The notes below the pieces were generated by a model. It was given only the letters and a program-made list of their open reading frames with translations, was not told the origin of the DNA and made no database searches. From the NCBI RefSeq assembly GCF_006345805.1, contig NW_021832231.1, forward strand, positions 1 through 64,000: a stretch of DNA of 64,000 bases. Reading direction: 5' to 3'. This document shows positions 4,034 through 51,957 of the stretch, one piece after another (the stretch's first letter is position 1; each line of letters opens with the position of its first letter). The DNA comes from Octopus sinensis (lineage: Eukaryota). The position numbers were made by a program, and so were the translations under genes.

Positions 4034-4097
4034 CTGTTGTTATGATTTATGCACTTTTTTAACAATATTCATTTGTAATAAGAGGGCAGTATATAGA

Positions 4098-5847: not shown

Positions 5848-5924
5848 GGGCGGATTAGAGTGGCTATTCGGATGTTTTATTAGTATAGTTAAGATTTACC
5901 AAATTTACATATCACAACTGTCAT

Positions 5925-6959
5925 TTAAAAATATTTCGCTTGTTTGAACGTATTTGGGCTAATCCCCCCCACGTCATGGTTAATTATATTCTCTTTACAC
6001 TCCTCATATCCCTCCCTCGGCTGTCGCTGTGCCTCCAAAATCTTAATTTTTTGATCTTTGTACACTTCGTAATCGGGGATCACGTTTATTTGGTGTGACT
6101 GACACAGAGGATTATAAGAGTTGGGTGTCCTCTGTTCGTGGTCGGGGATCACGTTTATCCACTGTGACAGAGTATTGAAGGATTTTGCTTCCTGTTCCAT
6201 GTAATATGTATTGTGGTAACTGAAGAGTCAGACTGAGTGATTACCAAGGACTAAAGTCGTCATTCACCCCAAGGTAGTACTCATTTCCGCATGTTTGTGC
6301 ATTGTCCTCCCCGTAGTAGTCCTGGGGGAGTACATCAGAGAACAAGTCAGGCCTGTAATCACCCTCGCGACCATCCTCTCTGAAGGAATAGTCGGGACCA
6401 CCCGCGTAGACGAATGACTGCTCCACCAATTTGGGACGACTAATTCTGAAAGAATGAAATATAATAATACCCTTTACGCTCATTCGTCCTCTTCCTCTGT
6501 CTTTTGTTCTTGAACCAATTGGAGACCTGCGACTCGGTCATCCCCATCGCCTTGGCCATTTCCTCCTTCTCGTCCGTGGATGCAAATTCGTTATTTCGGA
6601 AAAAGGCCTCGAGGAAATTCCTTGATTTCTGTGGCAAGTTGTACGACAACTTTTCCCCATTCCACACAGTCCGGGGTGGGGGGTACTTTTTTCTCAGTCT
6701 GAATTTTGCCACAGCCTTCAACTCTTTTCCGTGTGACCGGAGTTCTTGGTAGAACGATTCGTACCACAGTTTTTGCAGCTTATTCCAAATGTGGCAGGGA
6801 AATGTATTAGTGCTCAAGTAAGTTCGGATTTGACTGAATTGTTTTCGCGGAATAACTTGTCGATCACCTCAAATGGTACAAATCTTCGCGGTTGCTGAAA
6901 TGGGAGTAGTTACTGCACACTCGGCAGTCCATGTAAGGCATGTTGTGTGGACAGAACAT
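5925..6959 (-). pseudogene. SIX-class homeobox gene, copy 1, with two 1-nt deletions in exon 1 (pseudogene or consensus error)
   Basis: Same as 39358-40394 but missing a T near 6840 and a G near 6873, which breaks the frame upstream of the homeodomain. Confidence 0.7.
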
Positions 6960-8059: not shown

Positions 8060-8280
8060 CTAGCTATTATGTACTGGCTCGCAGGATTGAAAGACAATTT
8101 CCGCGTAAAACAGCCAGCGAGATCCTCTGAATAAGGAATATAAATTCCCTGGGATCTCTGGAGCGGTAGGTGCACAGGCGGCCAAGTTTCTTAAGATGAG
8201 CAAGCGTCTTGGCCCCAAAAACACAGGAAGTCTCGACGGCAATTGTCCAAAAGCGAAATCGATCGCGTAAATCCTCGAAT
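8060..8280 (-). mobile_element. CRE-like RLE retrotransposon, 3' fragment
   Basis: Encodes IAVETS.FG...ISLAVLRGNC-like C-terminus; homologous to 20160-20370. Confidence 0.75.
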
Positions 8281-8289
8281 TAATTACAA

Positions 8290-9010
8290 TAAAATTACAC
8301 GTTACAATGGTTTTTTGGATTATCTAAAGAAATGCTTTATAAAATTAAGATTTATAAAGATTCCACCTGTTTAGACAAAGAACTGGCAAAGAAAGAACGC
8401 TTTCTCGTCAGAAGTTTCTTGAATATCAGAAGAAGTTTTGACGGAGAAAAAGCTTTTATTTTTTAAAAGGGAAACTTTTGAGGTTCTTTGCAACTGACGA
8501 AGCTGAATTAAAGATGGAAACTATTGAGGTAAACTTATTGATTAAAATTTTAAGGCTGAGCACAATTCTAACTATTTTGGTAGAGATAAGCTTTTTATTT
8601 CATTAGCATCTAAACTATATGGAATAGAAACACCAGAAGTTGTAAAGTTATCGGACAGTGTACTTTTTGACAGGCAAGTTAAGTCATTTAATTTGTATTC
8701 TAAACTGTTAATAGCATCTAAACTTCTAATTACACCTATAATTGATTACAAAGTCATTGAAAATCTTAAAAAGCGGGCGAAAAAATTACCAGAAGATGGA
8801 AATTTGATGAAGAAGACATCATTGTGGAAGAGTCAGCGAGATTAAGAAACGACATCGATGCAAATAGAAGAAAGTTCCTATTATATGACGGAATATCTGC
8901 AAAAACATGTACAGTCTTAGAAATAATGGTCATTTCTATTCTATCAAAAATGAGGAAACTCGGGAAGAACTCACAAATATACACATATCAAGATTATCTA
9001 AATCAATAAT
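8290..9010 (+). mobile_element. Ginger-like transposase remnant (N-terminus/H2C2 fused to C-terminus)
   Basis: AEHNSNYFGRDKLF...LYGI (degenerate H2C2 region) after a 26-nt intron at 8529-8554. RLRNDIDANRRKFLLYD matches the C-termini at 12297 and 25159. Confidence 0.55.
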
Positions 9011-9617
9011 AATCAATGAAAAGATAGAATTATGTTTATGGTGGATATGTAGCCTGGCGGATTGCCAAACTGTTTCCCCGGATAATGGCAATCGAGAGCC
9101 GTTGCATTAGCCAGTTCGCCTCCCGAGGATCATGGGTGCAGATTATCTAAATTAAAAATAAATTATTAGTTTGCGTTGTATAAGTGGGATATTGGTATCT
9201 CATCGAGGAAAAAGTAAAATAGAGTTTAAAAAAAAACGTATATTTTAGCGTACAATTTTAATTAAAGAAAAAATTAAAAAAGTTTTTTTGGGTTCCGTCT
9301 CCGGGGTGGTTCCGCCTCTTACCTTTGATAATTAATTTAAAATAATTAAATCTATAATATTTGATTTTGTGATAAATCAACACTTCCAATGTCGGTTCTC
9401 GACAATCAATCAAAAATTTCTTATAGCTTGAGAAGGGATAGGGTTTGGTGCTCCTGTTTATGTGGTATAGTTTTTATGTGACAAAAAGGACACTGCTCGA
9501 TTAAAAGGAGATTTTTAAAAACTTATTTCTAATAAATTAAGACAAATTGCCGTTTCAGTGGCAGGGAGAGACCAAACGAGTTCTGAGAATGCCTCTCTTT
9601 TAATAATCAATGATTGA

Positions 9618-20159: not shown

Positions 20160-20460
20160 CTATTATGAACTGGCTCGCAGGATTGAAAGACAATTCCCGC
20201 GTAAAACAGTCAGCGAGATCCTTTGAATGAGGAATATAAATTCCCTCGGATCTCTGGAGCGGTGGGTGCACAAGCGTCCAAGTTTCTTGAGATGGCAAGC
20301 GTCTTGGCCCCAAAAACACAGGTTTCGACAGCAATTGCCCAAAAGCAAAATCGATCGAGTAAATCAACATATTTCGATAGTTTTGCAAATTCGGCCTTCT
20401 CGGCCGACGAGCCGGGACAAGCCGTCCCAAACGAGCTGTTTCCCGGATTCAAAAGCGAAC
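20160..20460 (-). mobile_element. CRE-like RLE retrotransposon, 3' fragment
   Basis: PGSSAEKAEFAKLSKYVDLLDRF.FWAIAVET...LKKLGRL...QRISLTVLRGNC, followed by an A-rich tail. Confidence 0.8.
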
Positions 20461-20635
20461 AGCGTACAGCCGTCCGAACAGCGTACCTTTAAATTGTAAT
20501 TAATCTAACTTCATGAAAGATCAGAGAACAACAAAGCGAAAACAGCGTGCAGAAACTTTTATAACTTTTAGAAGTTATTCCGACGTAAATTTATCATTTA
20601 TCAACATTATAGGGAGAAGAAGACGAACAAATAAA

Positions 20636-24407: not shown

Positions 24408-24811
24408 CTGGAACCCATCGGGCTTGACCGGGGAGATGGCAGAAGGCCCGATGGGATAACTCTTTTCCCGTACTCCCAGGGAAAATCACTCGCATGGGAT
24501 GCGACGTGCGTAGACACGTTCTCCCAGTCCATGATTCTTCGGAATATTCATTCGCCCGGTTGGGCCGCTAATGCGCAGAAAAGGCGAAGATATCTAAGTA
24601 TTTGGAGATCGGAAAACTTTTCCGTTTTGTTCCTATCTCGATAGAGACGTCTGGTGTAGTGGGATCCAAAACCGCGGAATTTCTCAAGGAAATTGGGGCG
24701 ATGCTGGCTAAACGAAGGAGGGACAGTCGCGAGGGGTATTGGCTTCGCCAACGTATCGGAATTGCAGTTCTTCGTGGCAACACGCACGCGATACTGGCTG
24801 CCGGAGCGTGA
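24408..24811 (+). mobile_element. CRE-like retrotransposon, 5'-truncated (RLE domain only)
   Basis: LEPIGLDRGDGRRPDGITLFPYSQGKSLAWDATCVDTF...FVPISIETSG...RQRIGIAVLRGN; one frameshift. Confidence 0.85.
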
Positions 24812-24859: not shown

Positions 24860-25365
24860 TTAACAAATTTAATTTTGTATAAATTGTAGTTGGTTGTGGT
24901 TATAGACTCATTTTCTAAATTCGCAGTTGTAAAACTTGCCAGGCGGAAATCAGCGGAGGAAATTACTAGAAAATTAAAGAACATTTTTTACATGATTGGT
25001 CCCGCATTTATTTTACAGACGGATAATGGGAAAGAATTTAAGAACAAATGTATTGAAACAATGTGTAATGATCTGAAAATCATACAAATAAGTGGACTCC
25101 CTAAAGCACCATGGATTCAGGGTCAAGTAGAAAGGCAAGTTATTTGTAACGAGGACGATTGAGAAATGATATTGATGCGAATCCAAATAACCGAAAATAC
25201 CCCCTATACGATCAGATTGATTCCACTATATATGAAATATCGGAGGTTGATAAATACAAATGCGTACTTAAAGATCTTAATGACGAATCATCCAAATATG
25301 TACACAAAAGTCGTATAAAAAAATATGACTCATATAAAAAATTTTTATATAATAAAAATTCATGA
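24860..25365 (+). mobile_element. Ginger-like integrase fragment with internal deletion
   Basis: VIDSFSKFA...LQTDNGKEF...PWIQGQVER fused to RNDIDANPNNRKYPLYD. Splice acceptor at the same codon as intron 2 of the 13.1-kb copy. Confidence 0.8.
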
Positions 25366-25696
25366 ATTTTTAATATTTGTTTTTAAATGGTAGACCTAAA
25401 AAATTGTATAATTATAATAAAATACGTTATTGATTCGGAAAAATTGGTGATCCGGTTTTTGCCGACTCTTTGGAAAATTCTTTCAATCAAAAAATGGATA
25501 AAAAAATTGAATAAATCGAATTAATTCCATTATCAAGTTATTTTTAATTAATTATCAGGTTATTTTCGTTTGATTTTAAAAAAAATTTAAAAGGGGTATT
25601 ATGTGACATGGGCCAAATGATACGTATGGGATGCGCGTTACACTGACCTTCAATTAATGTTAATCTGTCAATTTATCGATAGACTTCAAACAAACT

Positions 25697-26154
25697 TTTT
25701 TTTTTTTTTTTAATGAAAACCAACCAATAACTACAAGTTAAGCCGACGACGCCGACGCGATCGAGAAAGAATTAGAGCGTACTATCGCAAGGGATATCCG
25801 CTCGAAAAACCATCTCGATTCGCGGGCGTCGCCTGTGATGGCAGACATGCGGGATCCGATCTCCTGAACGAAGCTGATTGCCTTACTGCCCAAGGAACCG
25901 GAAGTCTCAACCGCGAATGGAAGGAATTGGAACTTCTCCGTAAGTGAGGAGTACTTCCGCATCTTTTTGCATCCGCGGTTGTGACAATAGATCCAGGAGC
26001 GGAGGCCGACATCAGCAGGTTCTGAGGCGAGAAAGAGTCCACACACGTGGCATCCCAGGTGAGAGGCTTCCCCTGTTGAAAGGAAACACAGTTATCCCGT
26101 CAGGCCTTTTTCCGTCCCCCCGATCGATCCCAGTGGGTTCAAGCAGGGAGGGGA
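25697..26154 (-). mobile_element. CRE-like retrotransposon, 5'-truncated, with poly(A) tail and 12-bp TSD
   Basis: RLE C-terminus (FLPFAVETSG...ERISLAIVRSN); A-tail at about 25696-25711; TSD TTCAAACAAACT at 25685-25696 and 26155-26166. Confidence 0.9.
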
Positions 26155-26997
26155 TTCAAACAAACTGATTATTGAATTAACAACTACAAAAATAATTAAT
26201 TTAATTAAGTTTTTTAATCCTGTCCATGCCGACTATAGAATTCTCCCCATTTGAGTGTTTAATCTATTAAATAAATAAATGTAAAACTACCTCTACGGGA
26301 TTATTCGACAAAATATTTATTATTTCAGCTGGCGGATAGTAATGTGATTCGAATTTATCCAGTCACAGCGATAGATTTGTAATAATTAGAAGTTTCACCA
26401 ATGGCTTTTTTTGGATCCGGATAGGAACATTTTGACTCGGAATCATTTACGTACACTCAACCCTCTCAAATTGGCATCAATGACCGTTAAATCTTTACAG
26501 TAAAGTAGCTTTGTCGGCACTGATATTCAATTTTATTCACTCCTCCGTGAGAATACTTGTGCAATGTGTCTGCAAAAAGCTCCATTTCAGATTCATTATC
26601 CAGAGTAATGACTAACTTAGAATCAGAGGATTAAGGATACAATCTGAAACTTATTGCGCATTCAAAAAAACCTTTCATTTATGATAGTGAAATTCTTTAT
26701 TTTATTGGCAAGCCTATATTTTTTGTGCCTCGAGAAATTTTCTGGAAATTTACCAGCCAACACATCCTTTAAAATCTCATATTCGATATTGTCTTTTACA
26801 AAACCCTTGTAAGAACTCATTACAACAAAATTAAACAAGAAAAAAACACGCTAGAAATGTAGGTTCGCCAACTTAAAAAATTAAAATCTTAATAATTGTA
26901 ACTTTAATAAATTAAAGATAATTTAACATGTTTGAAATCGATTAATTTAATATATTTTTTTCACCATAAAAAATTAAATTTCGGATAATCAAAGAAT

Positions 26998-29497
26998 CAA
27001 TTTTGGCACGCGCGTTGTTGTTGTTGTGGTGCACTTTTTATATTCATTTGTTCATTTGCTATTTGTTATTCAATTCAATAATTCTCTCTCTCTTTCCATT
27101 TCTCTTTATTCTCTCTCTTTTTCCATTTCTTTTTGTCATCCATTTGTTCATTGTTTTTATCTTGCTCTCTTTTTATGTCTTTCTGTTTCCAACCCACTTC
27201 TGTTCTATGCTCTACTTGCGAAGTTAGTAACAACCGCAAGAAAGGGAGAGTCTGTTCGAGTTGCGACAGATTCTTCCACCTTTCTTGCGTGCGTCTTTCC
27301 AGACGCGTTTCTGCCTCTCTCTTAATTTGGGACTGTCCTTCCTGCCGCTCTTGCCAGCCGGCTCAGTGTTCCAGCCCGCAAGAACTCCCCGAAAAACCGC
27401 CATTCGCAACATCCCCGTCTGCCGAGGAAGTTCTCAAATCTATCAAGCTCTTCCGTCGTCTCCGGAAAATCCCATCCAGAATCCCAAAAGCTGCGCGTAT
27501 CTTTGCAGCCTCCTCCCTGACCGCCGCAATCGATAAGGCTTTGGCATCTGATGGCCATTCCGATTGGCTTAAGCTGTTTTGCTTCGCCTCTTTCGGTCTC
27601 GGTTTTGCCCCATTAAGAGCCCGTGTGAAAACCTCCTCCATTTCGCTGGCTACAACCGTCAAACAAGAATTGGCCTTGTACGATAAGAACTCTTTTCCAT
27701 CCGCTGGCTGCGGACCACCTCGCTAGCACCGAATTTCCCTCTGGTTCACCATCCCATAATGTGTCCTCTCACGCGAATGACGTCGATTACCTCAACAGAA
27801 AGATTAATAGTAAACTCTTGGACGGCGACGTTCGTGGTGCAGTTAGGCTGGTTGCCTCGACAAGTTCCCTTTTGCCCACGACCCCTGCTGTTTTGAATTC
27901 CCTCAGGGAAAAACATCCCCCTCAGCCAAACGACTTCAGGCCTCAGCCGTCCCCTGACACCCTCGCTCTCAATCCTTTTGCTGTCTCGGAACTCTTGTAC
28001 TGAATGCCCTGAAGGACTTTTCACCTGGAAGCAGTGGTGGTGTAGATGGTCTGAGACCAGGTCATCTGAAAGACCTGACGTCTCCCACTACCGCCGAAGC
28101 TGGTCGAAAACTCCTACGCTCAATCACCACCTGTGCAACCGCTTCTCCGGTTCCCTCCCCGATTTTGCTCGTGATATTTTCTTTTCCGCCAACCTTACTG
28201 CCTCGGGAAAAAGGACAACGGCGTGAGGCCCATCGCCGTGGGCAATATTTTCCGGAGGCTCTCCGCTAAACTTCTGTGTCGAGCCATTGTTCCCTGCTTG
28301 TCCTCGAAGTTTCTGCCTGTCCAACTCGGGGTTGGCGTTCCTAACGGCTGCGAAGCTGCTGTCCACTCAATTCGTGATTTAACTGAATCATTTGAGGAGT
28401 TTATTATGGTCAAATTGGACGTTTCCAACGCATTCAATTCCATCAGACGGGACCACCTTCTGGAGTGCTGTCGTGAATTAGTCCCTTTCGCCTATCCCCT
28501 TGTGCATCTCTCATATGCTTGCTCAAGTATCCTTATGTTCAACGATATACCTATTTCTTCGTCTACCGGGGTTCAGCAGGGTGACCCCCTGGGCCCTGTT
28601 CTTTTCGCCTTGGGCGTTAATAATATTGCCCACTCTGTCCGTTCCCCAATTAACATTTGGTACCTTGACGATGCGACCATTTGTGGCCCTCCCGATGTTG
28701 TTTTTGGCGACCTCCGTTTCATTATTCCTTCCCTCTCGGCCATTGGCCTTTCTATAAACGACAACAAATCCGAAGTGGTGAACATCAATCTTAACCCAAA
28801 TTCATTCACTGTCGCGACTTCCACGTGCCAAAATATCCTTTCTGACGTCCAAGTCACCGACAAGTCGAATTTGATGATCCTCGGTGCTCCCATGGGTCCT
28901 TCTGCCCTTGAAGACACGCTGTCTTGCAAAATCTCTAATCTTTCCAAAATGATCGAGAAGCTCAAAGACATCGAGCCTCATGTAGCTTTCTTCCTACTGC
29001 GGAATTACTTTTCTATGCCTAAGGTCCTTTACACATTAAGGTGTGCTCCCTGTTTCAAAAGAGACGACCTTCTGTCAAATCTGGATAACATCCTCAGGCT
29101 CGGTACGAGCTCGCTATGTAATCTGGCCATTGACGATCCGGGTTGGTCTCAGGCATCGTTCTCAGAAACCTTCCCGAACGCAGAGCAGAAGAATGCTTCT
29201 CGCAGAGCAGAAGAATTAAAGATTTCAAAGTACACCAATCTCTCGGAACGCTATCTGTTTACCCCGATCGCCGTGGAGACCTCTGGCGTAATCGGTGACA
29301 GGTCACTCATTTTCCTCAAAAAGCTGGGTCGTCTGATTTCTCGCAAGAGAAACGACACGCGTGAGTGTGGATGGCTCCTTCAGAGGATTTCCCTTGCCAT
29401 TGTACGTGGAAACTGTTTCTCCATCTACGAGGCGGGGAAGTCCTCTTGTTAACTCTCTTTTCTCTCTGTTTTCGTTTACAAAATACAGATAAAAAAA
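26998..29497 (+). mobile_element. Full-length but decayed CRE-like non-LTR retrotransposon with N-terminal PHD finger; RT plus internally deleted RLE region
   Basis: ATG 27175; C4HC3 PHD; RIPKAAR and GDVRGAVR pre-RT motifs; RPIAVG, QLGVG, KLDVSNAFN, GVQQGDPLGP, WYLDD; RLE tail PIAVETSG. A-tail; TSD AATCAAAGAAT at 26987-26997 and 29498-29508. Confidence 0.88.
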
Positions 29498-29909
29498 AAT
29501 CAAAGAATTCTAATTTGACAGTTTCAATGTCAAATAATGTAACGCGCTGCCCATGTCACATATTATCCAACCCAGGGCATTATCCAGCCTGTGACATAAA
29601 ATATTAAATTTCATCCAAATTCGATAAACTAGTTTTCGAAATTACTTATGGCAATTCTGAGAGCGGTTGTACCAATTTGAACAAATACTATACTACAAAA
29701 ATTTTTTGTTTGAATCAAATAACCTTTTAGAAATTGAAAAGTTATGTCTTTTCGTATTCTCACATTTCTAAACACGTAAGAACTCAATAAAAAATTAGTT
29801 TTGTATAAAATTTAAACACAGAAACAATTTTCTCAGAAATTCATTTTATTCGTTTGCATAGAATTTTTTGAAAAAGTAACTACAGTGATTTTTGACTAGT
29901 CTATGAGTT

Positions 29910-30628
29910 GTTGACTTGACTGGCTCAAAGCTCTCCCCACTCCTAGTACGGGGTTACTACTGGACGACGAATCCTTGCGGATTGGGATCAGCTTACGATT
30001 GGGTTTGGACATCTGCCAGCCCCACCCTTGCCGGTGCGGGTCCTCAATTTCGTCAAACGGCTTGCACGCCTTGTCGTGTAAGAAGAGTGCCGGGAGAATT
30101 CCCCGTCACACTCATCTGAATGACGTTGTGAGGAGGGCTCTAGAGTCGGCTGGTTTCCCTTCCACCCTAGAGCCAGTCGGCCTTTCCCGGAGCGACGGCA
30201 AGCGTCCCGACGGGATGACGACCTTTCCTTTTAGGGAAGGCAAGTCCCTGGTTTGGGATGCCACGTGTGTCGACTCTTTTTCGGCGACAATGCTTCCCAG
30301 GACTGTCGCAAACCCGGGTTCCGCCAGTGCGCTGGCTGAAGAGACAAAGATGACGAAATACCGGTGTATTTCGGACGCTTTTGAGTTTGCCCCCCTCGCC
30401 TTCGAAACCTCTGGAATCGTCGGAAAGGCTGCGACTCAACTCCTCACCGCCATTGGTAGAAAAATCTCCACAAAAACAAACGACCGGAGGGAGACGAGCT
30501 GGCTGTTCCAGCGAATCTCGGTTGCTGTGCTCCGCGGAAACTGCCACTCAATACGCAGCGCGGCATCGTTGAGCTGACCCTCAGGCCCTCGACAATTCCC
30601 TTAGCCACCCAATTGCTTACTTTTTTCT
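29910..30628 (+). mobile_element. CRE-like retrotransposon, 5'-truncated (zinc knuckle plus RLE), 11-bp TSD
   Basis: CRCG...HALSC...RHTHLND...KRPDG...VWDATCVD...AFETSG. TSD GTCTATGAGTT at 29899-29909 and 30629-30639. No poly(A). Confidence 0.92.
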
Positions 30629-31549: not shown

Positions 31550-33123
31550 ATGGAAATACCTGAATCTCGTGGGTATAATTTTATTTTAATGGACAGTATT
31601 AAACTTGTCGAAAAAGCAGTAAATGAATTCAAATCGGATTATTTAAATAATCGGATCGAATTTGATCAACTCAAAAAAAATTTTGATTATAATCTATCTC
31701 TGATAAGTGAACGGGACTCGGAATTATTTCGTTACGAACAAATTCTATCCGGTCCTCGTTAATCCTTGACCTTCCCAGAATATCAAAAAATTATCTCTGA
31801 GAAAACAGGAACAGAAAGTGAGTTGAGAGTGGAAATAGACAAGCTCAAGGACGAGCGAAACAGCCTGGGACAGCGAGTGTTGGAGATGAGTGCTGAGATT
31901 AATGTCCTCGTCATGGAAAACCGCAAATTGGTGGAAAAGAGCAGACTGTTGGTCGGCAAGTTAACTTTGTAGAGAAATCGAGGAAGAAAGAAAAAAGTCT
32001 GGGATTCACATCAAGAACATCAAAGTCGAGGCAAACAACGAGATGAACAAACTGAAAGAACAATTTGAATCAGAAAGACGAGACCTTCTCCACAGATTCG
32101 AGCAAATCTTTCACGAAAGGACACTCGCACTAAGAACACAGATCCAATCGACGACCAAATTGTGTTCGGAGTACCAATTCGGAGTGGGTTATCGTAATGA
32201 CGGATAGGAGGTTGTATTGGAGAACGAGATCACCTCCTTGAGAGAGGATCTGCACAGGAAAGCCGAACAAATAATGAAGGACGAGGGCCAATTGGAGGAA
32301 AAGGAAAAGCAAATCCAACTGGCGAAGGTAGAAGTGGCAAACCTCCGATCCTCCTACGAAGAAAAGTAATCCGCGTGCATTTCCCAGGTGTTTCTACCTC
32401 AACAACATAATCAAGCACAACGAACAGTTGATCACTGAACTCAAGATGGAGGGGGAGATTACTAAGTTTGGTCAAAACCAACCGGAAACTCAACGACAAA
32501 TGAAGGACTTTTCAATGCAGACTTGTGAGGACTGTCGAATTGAACAGTTGACGGCCGCCAACCTTCGTCTGAAGAACGTGGTGAGTGGCATGAGAAAGCA
32601 GATCCAAGACTTGTCATCCTCGTGTAAAGAACCGAGTGAGCGAGTGAACGGTGATTGTTTGTGGGCATTCCAGAAATCATAAACTTGCAGAAGGCGTACT
32701 TGGTCAACAACATTGCCCACCAGCAAGCCACGATCACCCGACTGCAAGAGGAAGTCAAGCGAAGTAATCAGTCATCTAGGAAAGTTGTGGAGTAGTGCAA
32801 CCATCACTAGTACGAGACCACAGTGAAGAAACTGTTTCGGGGGATCGATAGAATGACAAGGAAAGGGAATGTCGAGTCGAGTCCTTCCCAGGCCGTGATA
32901 TATCTGACGCAGAAACTGAAGGAGGCGGTCTTCGTGATACACAGTCTGACTCAGGAGAAACAGCATTGTCTTGAAAATGTGTTTAAATCGGCGAAAGAAC
33001 AGTCCCCTAAAGAGTCCGAACATTGTATGTCCGTCTCCTTCTATTGTAGCTTTATCCCTCAACTCCCTCAACAACCTATTCGAGGCAGTCGACAATCTTA
33101 GCGTGGTTTCGGACTTGACTTAA
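31550..33123 (+). CDS. CCDC57: CCDC57-like centriolar coiled-coil protein
   Basis: LKKNFDYNLSLISERDSELFRYE resembles CCDC57 LQEDFVYNLQVLEERDLELERYD; ESELRVEIDKLK; ERRDLLHRFE. Several 21-25-nt introns; ends approximate. Confidence 0.65.
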
Positions 33124-33144
33124 TTTGAGTAGTAAAATAATTTA

Positions 33145-34216
33145 TTATGTGTTATTGCGCTCACATTTGAGTTGGTTGCTCATATATTCGTTGTCAATCT
33201 GCAGTTTCTGGGTGAGTCGAACCAAGTCCCTCTGCACAATCTCCGCATCGTCCAAGGATCCCCGCAAACAGCGTATTTGATTGTACAACTCGCGTATCTC
33301 CGCCTCACTCCTCTCCTGACACGTCACGACACTCCCCAACCTGCCTCTGCTTCGATTGCGTAATCATCGCACTGACCCCCTCGACGACATCCCCCTCCGA
33401 ACAAGTCATTCTCCCAATTTCGTCTAATCAGTCAGAATGAGTGCACTAACTTAGACAGTCAGCCAATCTCCTAATCTTCTGCTCATATTTCTCTTTGAGC
33501 ATGTCCGAATGGTCCTGCAGTTCGAAAGAGTGGGCAGATCTCATCGACTCGACTTCGTTGGCATGGTTGAGTTTGAGACGTTCGTTGATTTGGACCAACT
33601 CGATTATCCTCTCTCGATATTGCACAAGCAGGAACTCCATCTTCTACCATAACAAGTCGAGTCACCTCGTAGTTCGACGGGAGGTCCTTCTCCAGGGAGT
33701 CGTCCACCACAGAACGGTTCGTCTGAACATGTCAAACACACCCAACCGTCAATTTGTTAAAATCCAATTCTAATTTCTCCTGTTTTTTGACAGCCTGGCT
33801 GAGTGAGAGTTCCTGGGAGCTGACTTGCTTGCTGAGTAATGCAATCTGAGCAAGTAGTTAATAGACCAACGTCATTCTTGAGGGACTCGTTCAAATGACA
33901 ATACAAGACTGAGTCCTCCAACAATGGACTGATGCAACTAATGTGTCGACTCAACTCCGCCAGCTCGAAATACCCAATAATTGACAACCTTGTGAGGAAG
34001 AGTGTCCAGGATTGTTGGGTCAATGTTTATAGTCTCCTCCTCAGTCCCTTCCAACTCCTAGAATATGCACTCGCTGTATTTACTTGGCCTTTGTCGCCTA
34101 ACGCATCACGGACTATGAATATGAGTTGGTCGAATACCGGTTACGGCCACGTCGACTGCCTCCCTCAGACATGCCAACAGACTGGTGAATTGACTGTATT
34201 TGATTGGAGTCGACAT
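33145..34216 (-). CDS. Rabaptin/RABEP-like coiled-coil protein
   Basis: C-terminus SLDDAEIVQRDLVRLTQKLQ resembles the Rabaptin-5 Rab5-binding ELDVSEQVQRDFVKLSQTLQ. Multiple tiny introns. Confidence 0.55.
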
Positions 34217-34432
34217 TCACCACAAAAGATATCACACTATTTTAATAATTAAATCCCTTTTATATAAAGACAAACATCAATAAATAGTGTGCTAAAAATG
34301 CATACTGGAAAAATAAAATCAAACGGCAGTCGGGGAAGTTTTGCTTAATGTTCTACGGCAGTGCCCCCTCAAAACAACTTAACACAAAAGAGGACAAATA
34401 CAAAAAAGGACACAATAAAGATTAAAAACAAA

Positions 34433-35254
34433 TCAGGCAGTTCTGCGACTGAGACTAACATCGACACTACAAATGTGGATAAATAACAACCTCTCCAACA
34501 ACGCCTCCCTCAAACCATCGTCGGCCCCCCCGGCGAACATGAAGGCAGTCGTCTGCAATTGGAGAACTCGCTCGATCTGTCCAATCTCGGTGGGGGTGGT
34601 CGACAGTCCACAAAAGGCAGAAAAGTCATTGGCCACCAGTCCAGCCCCCACAGCCAACTTTCCACGATTGACAGTGCCCCCCATCAGAGGGATTTGGAGG
34701 AGGGAAGACAGTTCATCCAACTCCTCAACCTTGGAGGAGGCGTGAATCTAAACACAGTCAGAAGAGCAGCCAACAATTCCCCCCTTGTTTGAGAGCACGG
34801 AATATGTGCCCACCAACAGTTCATCAGCAAGACACGTGCGGAAGATCTCCACGCCCAACACGTCGGAAATGACCTCCTCTGTTTCTCTAGACAAGTCTGG
34901 GTGTGCTATTGCCACGTGGTCATTGCAGGAGATGACATTCCCCAGGGCGGATAGTCGTTCGTCCACGCGGGTCACCACCACGCAGTCAGGCAGGGAATTC
35001 CGGAAGTGCTGAATTTCGGTGTCGTAGGTGGCGGGGGGGAGTACAAGACCTCGCCGGTTGCCCACTGCCAGTCTCCCGACAATCCGACACTCGCCAATGG
35101 AGGAGTGGACGACTGGCATGCACCCACTCAGCTCGGATTCGAACTTGCTGTAGAAATTTTGAGAGGACCCGACTCCCACGAGACAGTACGAGTTGGTTAG
35201 CAGAGAAAAGACTCCAATGTTGCAATTGCCTTCAATGTTCACTCGATGAGCCAT
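34433..35254 (-). CDS. EIF6: Eukaryotic translation initiation factor 6 (copy 2)
   Basis: Identical translation to copy 1. Confidence 0.95.
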
Positions 35255-35360
35255 TACTACAAGCACACGAATATATCACGCTACAAATTATTTAATTAAT
35301 TTAAAAATCAACGAGGCTAATTTAGGAGGTTTATGTGTGGGTTGTATTAAGTAGTGTGCA

Positions 35361-37466
35361 ATGTATGGACTGAGTGTTTGGACGAGGATGGGCAATAAAG
35401 GCCGATTGTGGAATGTACTCACTCACCAGCAGACTGTCTCCTTCAGTAGGAGGACACCCTCCCAGATAAACCTGCTGTACATAGTGCGCAAACTGGTGCC
35501 CTATGTGTGGCCGAAAGAAAGAGCAATGCGGGCGAGGGTGGTGGGGGCTGTCGGGTGTCTGCTGGCGGCCAAAGTAGTGCAGAATATAATGGCAGATCAC
35601 CACCATTCAGACCCCCTTCATTTTCAAATTGGTGGTCGACCGACTCAACGACCAGAACATTGCCACCGTCTGCACATTGACTGTGGCCGGCCTCGTCGTG
35701 CTGTGTTAGTCCCCCTCCTGACTGGCAGATGGCCTCACGCGAGTGTGCACGCAGGTCTTCTCCGACCTCCGCCTGGCCATATTCTCGAAAGTGGCCCTCA
35801 AGGCCATCAAGACAGTGAACGAGAAGGTGTTCCGTCACCTGATGTACCTGGACATGTCCTACCACGCCAATAAGCAGACGGGGGCTGTTTCCCGAGTCAT
35901 CCAACGGGGCTCCGGGTCACCCTCGTTTGATAATTGTAGAGCCATCCAAGTCATTTTGACACACGTCGTGTTCAACATGTTCCCTCTCCTCCTCGAAACG
36001 TGCATTGTGGCCGGCATTCTGGTTGGGACTTGGTCTAATCCAGAAATACAAATGTGGGACACTCACTGCTATCGCCAGCGTCTCCTGCATTGCCTCCTAC
36101 TTTGTCTTCACTCTCGCAGTCACTCAGTGGCGGTGCCCCTCCTCTCTCATTCACAGTCTCCAGTTTAGAAAGAAAATGAACGAGTCGGAGACTGAGGCGG
36201 GGAACAAAGTGGTGGAGTGTCTCCTCAATATCGAGACCATCAAGGTGACTCCCCTCATGACGGCAGTACTTCTCCAACGAGGAACTGGAGACGGCCTCCT
36301 ATGGCAAAACATTGAGCAAATTCCAGGACTCCTCAGTCAAGACGTGGTGGAGTCTGGCATTGCTCAACTGCGGACAGAACTTGATCATCACGTCGGGAAT
36401 GACTGCCATCATGCTCCTCAGTCTCACTCAAGTCGAGCAGGGTCAGCTTTGTCCCTCACTGCAGGACTCCTCACCATCGGGGATATTGTTATGATCAATG
36501 GACTCCTCTTCCAACTCTCCATGCCTCTCAATTTCCTGGGGACTGTCTACCGTGACCTCAAACAGGCCACCATCGACTTGGAGGCACTCTTCGCCCTCCT
36601 TTCGATGCAGTCAGTCATTCGGGTGGCCACTCCCTCACATCCGTAGAATTCCCCCTCTGCACGCGAACTGATCCTTCGGGACTCGTCCATTTCCTTCGAG
36701 GACGTCCACTTTGCCTACGACAGTTCGACCGATGTGTTCAGAGGACTGTCCTTCCACATTCCCGGGGGCACATCTGCGGCCATCGTCGGGGGGAGTGGCT
36801 GTGGGTGACACTCCTCCTCTCATTCACAGCAAGTCCACCGTCGCCAAACTGCTGTGTCGACTGTACGACCCAGTGGGGGGGAGGGTCACCATCGACGGAC
36901 AGGACATCCGCTCGGTCACCCTTCACAGTCTGCGCACTCAAATGTCGGTCATCCCTCAGGACTGCACACTCTTCAATGACTCCATCCGCAACAACATCCT
37001 CTACGGAGACCCATTCGGCAGTCAGGAGGCCCTCACCGAGGCAGCCAGACTCGCCGAGATTGATCGACTGGTCGAGAGTCTCCCCCACAAGTACGAGACT
37101 GTCGTGGGGGAACGTGGCATGAAGCTTTCTGGGGGGGAAAAACAGCGGATAGCGATTGCGCGTGCCCTGGTGGGACAGCCGAGGATTGTGGTGTGCGACG
37201 AGGCCACGTCCAGTCTGGATTCCCTGACAGAGCAGGTGTGGGGGCGTCTAACTGTGCAGAGCATTGCCAGGTCGTTGAGGGTGGCCACGGCGGGGCGGAC
37301 AACTCTGGTGATTGCCCATCGACTGTCCACCATTATGCATGTCGACCGGATATTCGTCATCTCGGAGGGGAGGGTGTGTGAGCAGGGCACTCACTGGCAA
37401 CTCATCTCCAATCCCCACAGTTTATATCGAAGACTGTGGACCATTCAGAGTGAGTCCGCTACATAG
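35361..37466 (+). CDS. ABCB7: ABCB7/Atm1 (copy 2)
   Basis: Identical translation to copy 1. Confidence 0.95.
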
Positions 37467-37530
37467 CTGTTGTTATGATTTATGCACTTTTTTAACAATA
37501 TTCATTTGTAATAAGAGGGCAGTATATAGA

Positions 37531-39280
37531 ATGAATTGTATATTAACTATTTGCATTATTTTGATGGACAAAATAATAAAAGAATTACACGTATTGCTGG
37601 TTTATGATTCTCCCCGTCTGTGTGTTTATAAACTGTATTCCCCAAATATTGGACAATAGACCTAACGGCTAATTGGGAGGCCGAGTCCAATTACATGAAA
37701 GGACTTGAATTATTCGCATCGTCCGAATACAGCAAAGCCATAAACTCGTTCAACAAGGCAATTGGTATGACTAGGAGTGTCCTACCCAGCAGAGTTGGAT
37801 CCCGCCAATTCGACTTATTTGTTCCGCAGAATGATTACTTTCCGAGCCACAAAGCAGCACAAGTCAATGATGAGGGACTTGGATGACCTCCTCTTTATAA
37901 ATCCTCACCAGAAAACAGTTGTGATTGTTAACCAGCCAGGCATTAACATACCGAGCTGATCTCCTCACCAAAAAGTGCAATCTGGAAGAGGCGAGGAAGG
38001 ACTATCAAACACTCGTTCCCATTCCTCTGACCATGTAGTAGAAGTCTCTGGGGGAGTCAGTGGATGACCGTATTGCCCTCATTGGCCAACTGGAGGAGGC
38101 AGTGAATGGTTCTCTCAAGGCTGCTGCCAAGAATGATCACAACTCAGTCATTGACAAACTGGGATTTGTTCTCAAGGCAGTTCCTTGTTGATTACCTTAG
38201 AATTGTCTTTACTCGGTCGTGCTCTACCAAGTGAGGGCTGCCAGTTACATTGCGAGGGGAGACTTTGAGAGGGCAGTGTCCGATTATCGACAGGTCGTGG
38301 TGCTCAAGCCTCAGGACATGGAGGCAGTACTCCGATTGTCCTTCCTGATTTATGAAAGCGGGGATTGGGAGGACTCTCTCCAGTAATTGCTATTATCTAG
38401 GAGACAGGGTTATTCGGGGTTGTCTTCGAACAGACCCCGACAATCGGGATTGCATGAGACACTACAAAATAGTCAACAAACTCAACAAGATGTGGGGGAC
38501 CATCGAGGGGGCCAAATCTCAGTCTGATTGGGGCAAGTGCATTGATGTGGCCCACACGATCACACTCCCCACCTACAACCAGGCAGTGGCATTCCAGGCC
38601 AGTCAAGTCCTTTGTTTGTGTCAGTCCAAAGTAGTCCATCACATGTCACGTAGAATGCCCAAACTGCCCAACAAGCAGTGGCCAGTTGTTCGTCAGTCTT
38701 GGAAATTGATTCAGGCTTGGTTGGGACACTCTTCAGTCGAGGGGAGGCACATCTCCTGTTGGGGAACTTTGATAAAGGTGCAGTGTGTGTTGACATGCAG
38801 CCGAGAGTGATTTCCGAGCAGTGTCGGACAAACATCCAAACTACGAGGGAGTGCGGGAGGCCCTTCAGAGGTGTCAGAAGATGAGGAAGCAGGCCTCTAA
38901 ACGGGATTATTACAAGATTCTCGAATTGCCCAGGTCTTCAAGTCTGTGTGATGTGGCAGGAGTGCTTCGAAGGGTGACATTGTCAAGTCCTACCGTCGAC
39001 TGGCCAAGATCTGGCACCCTGACAGGCATTCAGGGGACGATAAAACAGTGGCGGAGGCAAAGTTCAAGGATATTGCGGACGCGAAGGAGGTGTTGAGTAA
39101 TCCGGGTTAGCCATGCTCGATTGAGGCGCAGATATGCGTAGGAAGTACGACAGTGGGACTGACCCTCTCGCCGAAGAAGAAGGTTCTTCCGGCTTTGAGG
39201 GATTCCACGGTGGGTTTCCCGGGGGATTCAAATTTAATTTCCACAATGGTGGTGGAAATGATTTTTTCTTCAACTTTTGA
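37531..39280 (+). CDS. DNAJC3: DNAJC3/P58IPK (copy 2)
   Basis: Identical translation to copy 1. Confidence 0.85.
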
Positions 39281-39357
39281 GGGCGGATTAGAGTGGCTAT
39301 TCGGATGTTTTATTAGTATAGTTAAGATTTACCAAATTTACATATCACAACTGTCAT

Positions 39358-40394
39358 TTAAAAATATTTCGCTTGTTTGAACGTATTTGGGCTAATCCCC
39401 CCCACGTCATGGTTAATTATATTCTCTTTACACTCCTCATATCCCTCCCTCGGCTGTCGCTGTGCCTCCAAAATCTTAATTTTTTGATCTTTGTACACTT
39501 CGTAATCGGGGATCACGTTTATTTGGTGTGACTGACACAGAGGATTATAAGAGTTGGGTGTCCTCTGTTCGTGGTCGGGGATCACGTTTATCCACTGTGA
39601 CAGAGTATTGAAGGATTTTGCTTCCTGTTCCATGTAATATGTATTGTGGTAACTGAAGAGTCAGACTGAGTGATTACCAAGGACTAAAGTCGTCATTCAC
39701 CCCAAGGTAGTACTCATTTCCGCATGTTTGTGCATTGTCCTCCCCGTAGTAGTCCTGGGGGAGTACATCAGAGAACAAGTCAGGCCTGTAATCACCCTCG
39801 CGACCATCCTCTCTGAAGGAATAGTCGGGACCACCCGCGTAGACGAATGACTGCTCCACCAATTTGGGACGACTAATTCTGAAAGAATGAAATATAATAA
39901 TACCCTTTACGCTCATTCGTCCTCTTCCTCTGTCTTTTGTTCTTGAACCAATTGGAGACCTGCGACTCGGTCATCCCCATCGCCTTGGCCATTTCCTCCT
40001 TCTCGTCCGTGGATGCAAATTCGTTATTTCGGAAAAAGGCCTCGAGGAAATTCCTTGATTTCTGTGGCAAGTTGTACGACAACTTTTCCCCATTCCACAC
40101 AGTCCGGGGTGGGGGGTACTTTTTTCTCAGTCTGAATTTTGCCACAGCCTTCAACTCTTTTCCGTGTGACCGGAGTTCTTGGTAGAACGATTCGTACCAC
40201 AGTTTTTGCAGCTTATTCCAAATGTGGCAGGGAAATGTATTAGTGCTCAAGTAAGTTCGGATTTGACTGAATTTGTTTTCGCGGAATAACTTGTCGATCA
40301 CCTCAAAGTGGTACAAATCTTCGCGGTTGCTGAAATGGGAGTAGTTACTGCACACTCGGCAGTCCATGTAAGGCATGTTGTGTGGACAGAACAT
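39358..40394 (-). CDS. Divergent SIX-class homeobox transcription factor (intact copy, 3 exons)
   Basis: LQKLWY...AKFRLRKKYPPPRTVWNGE (SIX domain end) and homeodomain with K50 (QVSNWFKNKRQR). Two 25-nt introns join ORFs 39873-40394, 39674-39916 and 39358-39633 in frame. Confidence 0.88.
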
Positions 40395-40829: not shown

Positions 40830-41400
40830 GAAGTTAAAAAGAAAAAGTCCGCCTGACGCAACTGCAGGGCGTCGGACTCCAGTTCCGAGGGTTTGCGTTC
40901 AAGCAGTTGCTCCAGGAGCCTGAACCAATTTGAAAAGGTTTTTGCTTGAATACGTGCCGGATAAAAGATCTTCATGATGTGAAAGGGAATGTGTTGGGAA
41001 ATTTTTAGCCTCAGAGCTCTGATGATCACATCGTTCTGAGCAGCGTGACGTGGCCCTCTTCTTGCACTTCTTCTGCATGATAAAGGGTGCAATCCCTTCG
41101 ACTGTTTTCCCGCGTCGGAATCATTGGTCCTGGCAAACTTCTAGCCTTTGTCCGATTCTAATCCTCAAGGAATCGTATAAAGTTCCGCAGTTTAGTATTG
41201 CACCAAGTCATGCTTCACTCCCTCACTTACAGCTGACACCAAACCCCCAAATCTGAAGCAAGTTTACATTGATTCCGACCAAGTTCGTCGAAGCGGACGT
41301 TAATTCAACAGTTTATTTGAGAGATTTGTCTATCGAAAGTAGACATTGTTTGTAGCAGAGTGAACATCGGATAGGTATAAAAGTTTGAGTAGTCTACTTT
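40830..41400 (-). mobile_element. Degraded CRE-like fragment, same subfamily as 46287-48335
   Basis: Near-identical blocks to 47150-48150 (ctactttcgatagacaaatctctcaaa; agaagtgc...gggccacgtcacgc) with deletions. Confidence 0.8.
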
Positions 41401-44900: not shown

Positions 44901-46286
44901 TTTGATTAGCTGATATTGAGCCACCTAATCTTGCGTGGTCATTGTTATTTCCACAAAATCTCGGTGATTCAATTCAAATAGTAACAATCATATGTTGGTT
45001 GAGTATTATTTTAACATAAATAGTCGATACAGACTGCTTTCCACGAGACATCATTCAAAAAACTGTTAAAAAGCGTTGCAGATAAATTATTTTGATAATT
45101 ATAATAATTTTTAAAAAATAATATAATAATTTAATTTATTTGCGATTTCTAATCAAAATTGGTCCCTTATGTTTTAAGACGCTAAAACACGATATCGCCA
45201 TTGTTAAATACGATCTGTTGATTTTTATTTTGTATACTCTTTAATTTGATCTCTATATGTTCTGTCTACTGTTTCGAATGCCTACTTATGAATATTGCTA
45301 ATTTTAAAACAAATTCACTTACAATGTTGAAAATCTCTATCAAAACTCGATCTATTCTTCACTCTAAAATATCTTCGTACATGGCTCTGCGATGAATAAC
45401 AGATAATCCTGTTTGGGAGTGGGTGACTTCATCCCCAAGTAAGTTTCTTCCCCCGTACGAGAGTAGCTGGGCAATCTTTGGAGCCCTCTCGGCGCATCCC
45501 TCCACTAATCGGTCCCTCCTGACGCTGTTGAAGGCAATTCGCAGATCAAGTTTAACAGCCACGTGAGGATAGAGCATCCTTTGAGAGAAAGACAGTTCGG
45601 GCCGCGTGTACGGCAGCTTCACAGCCGTTCGCGATCACGACTCCCAGTTGAAGTGGTGATAGCGGTGAGTAGATTTTGGCCTGCGGTCGTTTGAGAAATA
45701 AGGTAGTGTCCTGGCGTAGTCCGTCTATGCCCCCACCAGTGTTCCCTCTAAGCGAGTGGTAGCTATGCGCGCTGGGCACATTGCATTGTGCAGCGTTATA
45801 AAGTGACGTGTGCAAAAAATTTTTGGGGGGGGAAAATTTTACAATTAAAAAACCAATGGTTAAAAAAATAGGTCTAGTCAATTGGATATTCTCTTCTGTT
45901 TTTATTTTGTATCCAAAATTTGTATACTCGATCAAGATCCACTGTATTCCCACTTGTTAAATAGAACTTGATTCGCATGATCATCTCCAATGGTCAATCT
46001 CAAGTCTATTACGTAGTTTAGTTTTGATACAGTTCATCAAACTAAATCCACGTTCAGCATCAGCACTCGACGCTTGAAATGTGCCACAAATATCCCAAAT
46101 GTTGCAGTGGCTGAAAATTTTTTCTCCGCTAGTATATAGTAAATTACATCTTCAAATGTTTTCAAAGCACCAGAGTGCAGTTTTTCTTTTAAAATAAACT
46201 TGAGATCTGTATATTCCGACTGCAGTTTTATGAGTGGGACTTCTGAAGAGAGTAATTAAATTTTTTTTTTCGCTAATTTAATTATC

Positions 46287-48335
46287 AGAGAATTGCTCTT
46301 CTCCGCAAGGCTACTCGCGTTCAAAAAACCCAACGGAGGAATCCGCCCCATTGCGGTCGGAAACTATTTCAGAAGACTCGCAGCGAAGATTGCTTCGACC
46401 TCTGAGCCGCCCACTCGGTGCGGAGTTCTTCCCAGAACAAATGGGTGTTAGTATCCAGAACGGATGTGAGGCAGCGGTTCATGCAGCAAGGCGTTTCTTC
46501 ACACAGAAGAATACTGCAAACGAATGCATTGGAATCAAATTGGACATAACCAATGCATTCAATTCTCTCAGAAGAGACTCCATTATGGAAAGTGTTGGAA
46601 GAGGGCTCCCATGCTTTTCCCTCTTGTTAAATTGTCATACGGAGAAGATACGTCTCTGGTTTTTGATGATGAAATCATTAAATCAAAAACTGGTGTCCAG
46701 CAGGGAGATCCGCTCGGACCCCTCTTATTTGCCCTGACAATTGATGATGTTGTGAGATCAATTGACGCACAACTAAATCTCTGGTATCTCGACGATGCCA
46801 CAATTGGAGGATCTTTCGAGGAAACATACAACTTTACGTCAAGCACTTCCCGCATTAAAACACTTGGGATTGGACATCAACATTAACAAATCAGAGTTAA
46901 TAAATGTCTCATACTCAAACACCGACTTTCTCTCTATCAAGGAGTTTTTCAACGAACTGCTTCCCGGGATCCCGACTGTGCCAGTTGATAAACTATATTT
47001 CCTTGGATGTCCACTCAGTGAAGACGAACTCAGGAACCATCTACTTTCTAAAAATGAAGAATTATCTCGCCTCGCAAAAAGATTGTCATGCCTCGACTCT
47101 CACACATCCTTCTTCCTGATGAGAAACAACATCGGACTACCCAAGCTTTTATACCTACTGCGAAGTTTCACCTGCCACGAACATTACGACAGTCTACTTT
47201 CGATAGACAAATCTCTCAAACAAACTGTTGAGTCACTAATCAACGTCCGCTTCGACGAACTCGGTTGGAAGCAATGTAAGCTTCCCTCTGGATTTGGGGG
47301 TGTCGGTCTAAGATCGGCGCTGGAGGTCGCGTACCCGGCATATCTTTCGTCTCTCTCAAGCTGCAACCATTTGACACGGCAAGTCCTTCGTCCACTATTG
47401 GACTTCGCTGGAATGAGTCATTTGATGAAGCTTGCCGGGATTGGAACGGGTCAGGACTCAAAATCCCCGAAGACACAACGAAACAAAGGAACTGGGATAA
47501 CATTGTCTGCTCCAAAATTTCAGAAGGGCTTAAAAAAGAAGCAAATCAACATCGCCTTGCTTGCCTGGTGTCAGCCTCAAGTGGAGGGAGCGGAGCATGG
47601 CTTGGTGCAATCCCTTGCCCAAATCTCGGGACTTTTTTGGACGACGATTCTTTGAGGATTGGAATCGGACAAAGACTTGGACTAGACGTTTGCCAGGAGC
47701 ACCGATGCCGCTGCGGGAAAACGGTCGATACGAAGGGATTGCACCCGCTATCCTGCAGGAGATCCGCCGGAAGAGGACCACGTCACGCCGCTCTGAACGA
47801 CGTGATCGTCAGAGCTCTGAAGGCTGCAGGCTTCCCAGCACAGCTTGAACCAGTGGGTCTCGATCGAGGTGATGGAAAGAGACCTGACGGGATGACTCTT
47901 TTCCTTTCAACTCCGGACGATCTTTAGTCTGGGACGCAACTTGCGTCGATACTTACTCAGCACGAATCTCCTTAAATCGGTTCAGACACCTGGAGCAGCT
48001 GCCTCAATCGCGGAAAACCTTAAAACCAAAAAATATTCCTTCCTCCTCGGGACCGCTACAGATTCACCCCTGTTGCGGCTGAGTCATCAGGAGCTGTTGG
48101 CCCAGCGACTGCCGAGTTCTTGCGCGAACTCGGAAGAATGCTCGCCACAAAAGAAAATGATCCTCGTGAAGGAGTATGGCTAAGACAAAGGATCGGAATA
48201 GCCATACTCCAAGGGAAACTCGCTTTCCATACAGGCAGCGGGCTTCCTCAATTGATTTCTCAAATCATCTCTTCTCTGAATTTATTAACTGACATTATTA
48301 ATATCGATAATTAGATAAAAAAAAAAAAAAAAAAA
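46287..48335 (+). mobile_element. CRE-like retrotransposon, 5'-truncated in RT, with frameshifts and a 21-nt poly(A)
   Basis: GGIRPIAVGNYFRRL; KLDITNAFN; GVQQGDPLGP; WYLDD; CRCG...HPLSC; KRPDG; A21 at 48317-48337. Confidence 0.92.
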
Positions 48336-51850: not shown

Positions 51851-51957
51851 GTCTCTGACTTAGTATTTCCGAGTAACAAGATCCATTCACAACAGCTATA
51901 AATATTACTATAAAAATTTAAAACTTGTATAGCTAAATTCGATTATTTATTATATTA

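Follow-up and report, generated by a model that had tools for sequence, protein, structure and literature searches.

An N-terminal PHD finger conserved in a lineage of CRE-II-type retrotransposons and present in a dead copy from Octopus sinensis

Background

Among long interspersed nuclear elements (LINEs), those that carry a restriction-like endonuclease (RLE), such as R2, CRE, NeSL and R4, are the textbook case of site-specific retrotransposons and are under engineering for gene insertion. It is their N-terminal DNA-binding modules which determine the landing site. Can a PHD finger belong to the N-terminus of such an element, and what would it do there? This question is raised by a stretch of 64,000 nt from Octopus sinensis (assembly GCF_006345805.1, contig NW_021832231.1, positions 1 to 64,000; the whole of it is called the window here). 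In this window a first-pass annotation, made from the letters alone, had described a CRE-like retrotransposon which starts with a complete C4HC3 PHD finger in the place of the usual zinc-finger (ZF) or Myb module. We show here that the finger belongs to the conserved layout of a large lineage, of which the window holds a dead copy at 26998–29497, and that the element falls into the CRE group. The reading we favour, with a probability of roughly 0.6, is that this lineage-conserved finger replaces the ZF and Myb modules and may act as a generic tether to DNA or nucleosomes.

PHD fingers are established in LINEs with an APE-type endonuclease, namely in CR1 and L2 and including elements that have only one open reading frame (ORF); a general role in targeting was proposed for them, with no functional study (PMC4120745). 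For RLE elements, N-terminal zinc fingers, Myb domains, Ulp1 protease or RNase H have been described (PMC4640811, PMC5678591). In the full-text literature, a comparison that did not cover Repbase and Dfam entries, we found no PHD finger described in CRE, HERO, NeSL, R4 or R2 elements; occurrences of 'PHD' in reviews on R2 denote the academic degree and were discarded. Since these two databases lie outside the comparison, it is a provisional statement that a PHD finger in an RLE-type LINE has not yet been described.

Identity of the N-terminal domain

An ORF in frame 1 of the forward strand (27133–27726, first ATG at 27175) encodes MSFCFQPTSVLCSTCEVSNNRKKGRVCSSCDRFFHLSCVRLSRRVSASLLIWDCPSC. Close to its start it shows exactly the C4HC3 pattern reported before (Table 1), and a scan of six frames found this pattern nowhere else in the 64 kb. 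The Trp two residues ahead of the seventh Cys is present and the spacing is the canonical one for C4HC3. Searched with the Pfam PHD model (PF00628), as had been proposed for a check, the window finger scores 24.7 bits (E = 2.4e-5; 25.1 bits with a trimmed query), narrowly above the gathering threshold of 24 bits. Because the pass is so narrow, independent support was sought. A profile built from 25 family members matches the PHD fingers of PHF2, PHF8, BPTF, TAF3, Alfin-like proteins and CFP1 in the PDB with E values of about 2e-8, and all of the 25 relatives match Pfam PHD individually (E ≤0.01, the best 4.4e-8). An AlphaFold2 model computed on the 25-member alignment reaches a predicted local distance difference test score (pLDDT) of 95–98 over residues 1–50. 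Foldseek places the modelled finger on the PHD finger of AL1 (5y20) with a TM score of 0.88 and a root-mean-square deviation of 1.1 Å, and returns dozens of further PHD structures at a probability of 1.00. For the window finger the interleaved two-zinc fold of PHD domains is thus predicted. Its spacing is also that of most relatives, with 11 residues in loop 1 (74 of 92) and 15 in loop 3 (86 of 92). Judged from Pfam, family profile and structure model together, the domain in the window is a PHD finger.

Conservation of the finger in a large lineage

A finger seen in one degenerate copy might be a host exon captured by a dead element or a chance arrangement of cysteines. The decay of the window copy and its marginal Pfam score would suit this explanation, as would the fact that none of the 120 best matches to its reverse transcriptase (RT) has a precomputed PHD annotation. 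The close relatives of the window copy at loci L001 and L002/L003 are 5'-truncated. All four cephalopod copies that were followed to their 5' end (the window, L003, L010 and L011) carry a PHD finger with the same spacing (Table 1). In the window and at the O. sinensis loci L003 and L010 it is preceded by a 5' untranslated region (UTR) that starts with GTTGTTG...GTGGTGCAC; L011 has no more than a brief stretch of GTTGTTG some 70 nt 5' of its finger. Locus L010 (positions 2181–5356, O. sinensis VCDQ01001009.1) holds a second, near full-length member bounded by a target-site duplication (TSD) of 12 bp, AAATGTAACAAT. It ends in an A13 tail, has its finger at 2382 and possesses an RLE which aligns to the C-terminal query of the family. 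As a reference copy it is better suited than the window element.

An exhaustive HMMER (phmmer) search of 1.84 billion representative proteins with the 183-aa N-terminus yielded 173 clusters at E ≤1e-3, 50 of them at E ≤1e-10. The majority of the 173 align to residues 8–170 of the query, hence to the finger and the region in front of the RT (pre-RT) jointly, and the C4HC3 pattern occurs in 99 of the 149 matches listed, a number that excludes one already known from the RT search. A word-indexed protein search with the same N-terminus gave no match, and six only when the 25-sequence profile was used. Proteins in which PHD finger, RT and RLE follow each other without interruption are P0170 (985 aa) and P0155 (1035 aa); P0140 (953 aa) begins within the finger. 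The layout of the lineage is a PHD finger, a short linker, a helical pre-RT region, the RT, a linker with a CCHC knuckle and the RLE. The full-length PHD proteins come from Tara Oceans, from other metagenome or Logan contigs and from one NCBI assembly. Across the 25-member alignment there is no variation at the eight zinc ligands, at the Trp or at an Arg-Lys pair in loop 1. That annotations are missing can be put down to gene models, most of which start past the finger, and to Pfam scores of 17–21 bits, just below the threshold. The four cephalopod 5' ends, the 173 clusters with finger and pre-RT region fused and the invariant ligands refute capture by a single copy, and we leave this explanation, together with that of a chance pattern, practically no weight. 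A PHD finger is conserved in a large lineage of such elements.

Placement in the CRE group

The closest matches of the window RT are proteins of O. sinensis itself (83–84% identity). Reference RT sequences were taken from the alignment deposited with PMC5678591. Among these the best blastp match is Cre-1_BM, classified as LINE/CRE-II by RepeatMasker (E = 3.6e-84, 41.7% identity over 302 residues), followed by CRE2, CZAR, SLACS and CRE1 (E values from 1e-12 to 1e-19, 25–29% identity) and by R2 (1e-8 to 1e-11), and NeSL/Utopia, HERO and R4/Dong do no better than 1e-5. Neighbour joining on 305 columns (200 bootstraps, a limited reference set) gave a tree in which the window RT, the octopus proteins, the PHD- and SAP-bearing proteins, Cre-1_BM, Cre-1_HM and CRE1/CRE2/SLACS/CZAR form one clade with 83% support. 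HERO, an animal RLE clade without site specificity, had initially been deemed the likelier home. It was dropped, as its RT matches at E 2e-4 at best and it lies outside the CRE clade.

Both comparisons bear out the first-pass view of a CRE-like element: tree and best match place the RT with CRE and CRE-II and not with R2, R4, NeSL or HERO. Assignment to the CRE group, more exactly to CRE-II of the Cre-1_BM type, is therefore supported. It also fits a published LINE tree of molluscs in which an O. sinensis clade appears as sister of CRE; in the same survey, elements of the CRE, R2-Hero and R4-Dong types were, among the molluscs, nearly confined to cephalopods (PMC10294476).

At the C-terminus the relatives and a neighbouring copy in the window (29921–30577) share the invariant elements C..C..H...C, RH, LEP, RPD, WD.T and E..K..Y. 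When the C-terminal profile A4 was compared with the PDB, its best match was residues 932–997 of R2Bm (8gh6), covering knuckle and RLE, at a weak E value of 0.023; a phmmer search of the PDB with P0170 reached a PHD finger only, not R2.

Comparison with known elements

Canonical CRE elements insert site-specifically into spliced-leader genes. In contrast, the window and L010 copies, judged by their two junctions, lie at unrelated A+T-rich sites. CRE1 and CRE2 of Crithidia, SLACS of T. brucei and CZAR of T. cruzi share with the window lineage a single ORF, the RT, the CCHC knuckle and the RLE, but they possess N-terminal zinc-finger modules (PMC4640811) where the window lineage has its PHD finger. 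Upstream of the RT, Pfam finds the PHD finger only, and neither C2H2 nor Myb domains, in the window ORF, P0140, P0155 and P0170, so the replacement of the usual module had been described correctly. The likeness is closest to Cre-1_BM of Bombyx mori. In the RT the two share the motifs GGLDG, RPIAVG, QLGVG..GCEAAVH, VKxDxxNAFN, QQGDPLGP and WYLDD, and the knuckle C-x-C-G-x8-H-x3-C of Cre-1_BM also occurs in relatives of the window element. The nearest relatives of Cre-1_BM in our set carry a SAP motif (P0074, P0081) or are truncated gene models.

R2, exemplified by R2Bm (8gh6), has a comparable order of parts, with a single ORF, an N-terminal module for nucleic acid or chromatin, RT, CCHC knuckle and RLE. 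It differs in its C2H2 zinc fingers and Myb domain, in its specificity for one site in the 28S rDNA and in the distance of its RT given above. CR1 and L2 resemble the window lineage in their N-terminal PHD finger of about 50 residues (PMC4120745), which has similar structural matches (Pygo, 2vpb/3zpv; PHF8, 1wep). They belong to the Jockey superfamily with an APE endonuclease, whereas the window element belongs with the RLE elements, in the CRE group. The occurrence of PHD fingers in LINEs is thereby widened from APE-type CR1/L2 to RLE-type CRE, and their presence in both types raises the question of domain transfer between LINE groups.

The N-terminal position is occupied differently in other relatives. 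In P0074 and P0081, members of a sister lineage near Cre-1_BM in the tree, the PHD finger is replaced by a SAP motif, scoring 27 and 25.7 bits against a cut-off of 23.9, which precedes the same IPKxSR helical region. In four relatives with PHD finger, RT and RLE the ORF continues past the endonuclease into a ubiquitin-specific protease domain (Pfam UCH). Two of them, P0216 (L005:286–4473, a Tara Oceans marine contig; 195 bits) and P0259 (142 bits), have the complete domain; P0148 (L007:16–4326) and P0212 have part of it. No description of a UCH or deubiquitinase domain in non-LTR (long terminal repeat) elements was found in the literature. In view of the variants with PHD, with SAP and with an added UCH domain the targeting slot looks modular.

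Possible function of the finger

What the finger may bind was approached through residue and charge statistics over 92 family members. Readers of H3K4me3 hold their ligand in an aromatic cage that consists of a Trp, placed ahead of the His ligand by two residues, and of aromatic residues before the first Cys and in loop 1. In an alignment with PHF2 the window finger has, as noticed in the first-pass annotation, a Phe at the position of the cage Trp of PHF2/BPTF-type readers. Throughout the family this position holds Trp in 16 and any aromatic residue in 35 of the 92 members; the residue preceding the first Cys is aromatic in three and loop 1 contains an aromatic residue in 19. The aromatic cage of the BPTF, PHF2, TAF3 and ING subclass is thus not conserved. 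Instead, loop 1 bears the signature Asn-x-Arg-Lys, which is invariant in the 25-member alignment, and 81 of the 92 members possess a basic pair there. The net charge of the finger averages +5.5 (range −1 to +10). The stretch of PHF2 that aligns to the family profile is strongly acidic, as has to be expected because this domain grips the basic H3 tail; the mean charge of +5.5 and the Arg-Lys pair therefore make the family a poor fit to such a tail. A reader subclass could be assigned neither from the profile, whose second half (CV.L....A..L..W.C..C) resembles the PHF2/BPTF/TAF3 type, nor from the single octopus sequence, for which the fingers of MLL3/4, ATXR5, KAT6A and UHRF1 are the best matches. 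From these sequence features we lean against the finger being a reader of H3K4me3.

In the reading we prefer, the PHD finger would stand in for the ZF and Myb modules of R2-type elements and would most likely tether the ribonucleoprotein to DNA or nucleosomes via its basic surface. Strict sequence specificity would then not be expected for the PHD-bearing lineage. A role as generic tether to chromatin or DNA gains support from the SAP motif, a DNA-binding motif, which fills the same slot in the sister lineage. Several points weigh against this reading. The Pfam pass of the window copy is marginal, the tree is a neighbour-joining tree on 305 columns with a small reference set and with weak support within CRE-II, and the ligand is proposed from the composition of the finger alone. 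Furthermore, the best matches of the profile among solved structures are PHD fingers that read H3K4me3 (PHF2, PHF8, BPTF, TAF3, Alfin-like), and with an aromatic residue kept at the key cage site in 35 of 92 some members could bind methyl-lysine. Finally, a 3' flank of about 245 bp shared by two neighbouring copies (see below) hints at a target preference which a tether leaves unexplained.

An alternative, raised in the first-pass annotation, is that the finger reads histone tails and that the lineage chooses its insertion sites by chromatin state. Chromoviruses, which are steered by chromodomains, would be a parallel. In fold and in best solved matches the finger resembles PHD fingers that bind histone H3, and the same has been proposed for the fingers of CR1 and L2 (PMC4120745). 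The two TSD-bounded copies lie at sites that differ in sequence, and a regional preference could be the cause for the clustering of at least 14 superfamily fragments within 64 kb. However, such clustering may just reflect a genome consisting of transposons to about 57% (PMC10294476). The cage is not conserved, with Trp at the key site in only 16 of 92 members and its other sites non-aromatic, and the acidic residues with which readers of unmodified H3K4 hold the tail are replaced by the basic Asn-x-Arg-Lys loop, in keeping with the positive mean charge. Histone reading and chromatin targeting are possible but unsupported by our data, and we regard this explanation as unlikely. Somewhat more doubtful still is that the finger has nothing to do with targeting and mediates protein–protein or ubiquitin-linked contacts, such as recruitment of host factors, nuclear import or protection from degradation. 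PHD and RING domains resemble each other, and the window ORF gives a zf-RING_2 match, but with 10 bits it is far under the cut-off of 27. PHD fingers with partners other than histones are known, and the PHF2–VRK1 and Pygo–BCL9 structures are among the Foldseek matches. The UCH domain of several relatives suggests dealings with the ubiquitin system; however, neither the octopus copies nor P0170, P0155 and P0140 have it, and the DNA-binding SAP motif in the slot of the sister lineage also speaks against contacts of this kind.

A farther-reaching version would be that a widespread animal branch of RLE-bearing, CRE-type LINEs dropped ZF/Myb targeting in favour of an exchangeable N-terminal chromatin module, and that the PHD finger steers integration through a nucleosome or histone feature. 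We consider this improbable. If true, no RLE LINE guided by chromatin would have been known before; the module would be a PHD finger in cephalopods and marine animals and SAP in the sister lineage, with a deubiquitinase sometimes added at the C-terminus. In any case, members of the PHD lineage are variants provided by nature with which the search for targets by an RLE LINE can be studied in the absence of a sequence-specific reader.

Structure and decay of the window copy

The boundaries of the element were derived from an 11-bp TSD, AATCAAAGAAT. Within the 64 kb this sequence is found at 26987 and at 29498 and nowhere else; among shuffled junction regions a match of at least 11 bases arose in 12 of 2000. 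This pair brackets the element, which therefore extends over 26998–29497 with an A9 run at its 3' end. The linker behind the finger is short and rich in proline and serine, and the AlphaFold2 model shows the pre-RT helices (residues 75–163) mostly at pLDDT 80–98. Downstream of this helical region follow the KLLDGDVRGAVRL...KHP region, RT motif 0 (SSGGVDGLRPGHL) and the RT. All parts from the PHD finger to the RT that had been described as one TSD-bounded element are present within it, but the ORF is not intact. Four frameshifts lie between 27716 and 28226: from frame 1 to 2 at about 27716, from 2 to 1 at about 27997, from 1 to 3 at about 28130 and from 3 to 2 at about 28202–28226. Furthermore, residues 626–851 of P0140, about 225 codons, are absent at about 29155; this deletion took the linker together with the CCHC knuckle, and from the RLE its catalytic E/PD/D half. 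Because of the four frameshifts and the lost codons the copy is dead, and it is an ordinary insertion for an octopus genome. What was lost is illustrated by the neighbour at 29921–30577, where the motifs CRCG..H...C, RH, LEP, KRPDG, WDAT, AE..K..KY and RGN are retained.

The family shows the hallmarks of target-primed reverse transcription, with TSDs of 11 and 12 bp, A9 and A13 tails and frequent 5' truncation; most of the superfamily fragments in the window lack their 5' parts.

Table 1. Positions of the element, its parts and related sequences in the window, and PHD fingers of further cephalopod copies
Feature	Position	Strand	Evidence or remark
5' TSD copy, AATCAAAGAAT	26987–26997	+	One of two occurrences in the window
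5' UTR, conserved start ...CAC(GCGC)GTTGTTGTTGTTGTGGTGCAC	26998–27174	+	Similar start in L003 and L010
Opening ORF segment (183 codons in frame 1) with PHD finger, linker of low complexity and helical pre-RT region (RIPKAAR...W..LF.F)	27175–27726	+	
PHD finger C4HC3, CSTC-x11-CSSC-x4-H-x2-C-x13-W-x-CPSC; CSTCEVSNNRKKGRVCSSCDRFFHLSC...WDCPSC	27208–27345	+	Pfam; profile against PDB; Foldseek
Pre-RT continuation, frame 2, KLLDGDVRGAVRLVAS...LREKHP, past frameshift 1	27716–28003	+	tblastn with P0010, P0140, P0170; three-frame translation
RT motif 0 onward (SSGGVDGLRPGHLKDL...), broken across frames 1, 3 and 2 by three frameshifts	27997–28247	+	
RT and thumb (RPIAVG, VKLDVSNAFNS, GVQQGDPLGP, WYLDDA)	28202–29155	+	Pfam RVT_1, 54 bits; blastp with Cre-1_BM; neighbour-joining tree
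C-terminal tail of the endonuclease (...ETSG...QRISLAIVRGN), after internal deletion	29153–29452	+	Alignment with P0140
Short 3' UTR closing in A9 run	29453–29497	+	L001, L003 and L010 likewise end in A runs
3' TSD copy, AATCAAAGAAT	29498–29508	+	Second of two window occurrences
Copy from a related subfamily, 5'-truncated and separate from the focal element	29921–30577	+	Complete CCHC knuckle and RLE
5'-truncated superfamily copy, head-to-head with the focal element	25738–26152	−	
Further CRE-II fragments (at least 13)	8076–9131, 20172–20474, 24408–24802, 25777–26152, 29921–30568		
Further CRE-II fragments, continued	41006–41098, 45404–48218, 49726–50033, 51543–54919		
PHD finger of L003, CLICSTNNTRKKARKCFDCQRDVHLSC...WKCPTC	L003:5959		
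PHD finger of L010, CSVCNIRNNRKKTIRCDRCYAFFHLSC...WVCSAC	L010:2382		
PHD finger of L011, CASCRLSNRRKKSRTCSSCQDYFHLSC...WNCKNC	L011:2105		

Insertion sites and flanking sequences

Two complete junctions are available, with the TSDs AATCAAAGAAT in the window and AAATGTAACAAT in L010, and both lie at A+T-rich sites unrelated to each other. Such differing sites fit a loose sequence specificity and are silent on chromatin. An RNA gene as target was considered and dropped, as scans of the flanks with Rfam and for tRNAs found none.

The 3' flank of the focal element (29468–29714, forward strand) and that of its inverted neighbour (25482–25720, reverse strand) are homologous for about 245 bp past the A runs. 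Their local alignment score is 89, against 46.5 ± 7.2 and a maximum of 75 for shuffled sequences. The two flanks have a 17-mer, TGTAACGCGCNNCCCAT, in common, for which the window offers no third occurrence (0.06 expected). This homology was not seen in the other copies compared. That the sequence behind the A9 run is the 3' UTR of the element was dropped, since the TSD contradicts it and other copies are without it. As the TSD ends the element before the shared flank, the simplest reading is two insertions into one host repeat; both neighbouring copies may have landed in the same repeat.

Surroundings in the window

At least 14 fragments of the superfamily, mostly 5'-truncated, are distributed over both strands of the window, with clusters at 24–31 kb and 45–55 kb. 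None of the CRE-II fragments other than the focal element (at least 13) reaches the PHD finger. Wedged between CRE-II fragments at 24890–25162 (forward strand) is an ORF of 90 codons that reaches 32.3 bits with the retroviral-type integrase core of Pfam (rve), slightly short of the cut-off at 32.6. Its probable source is an LTR retrotransposon or a similar element, of which it would be a fragment. Over the regions 1–6000, 32000–40000 and 56000–64000, blocks with a G+C content of about 46–56% alternate with blocks of 28–37%.

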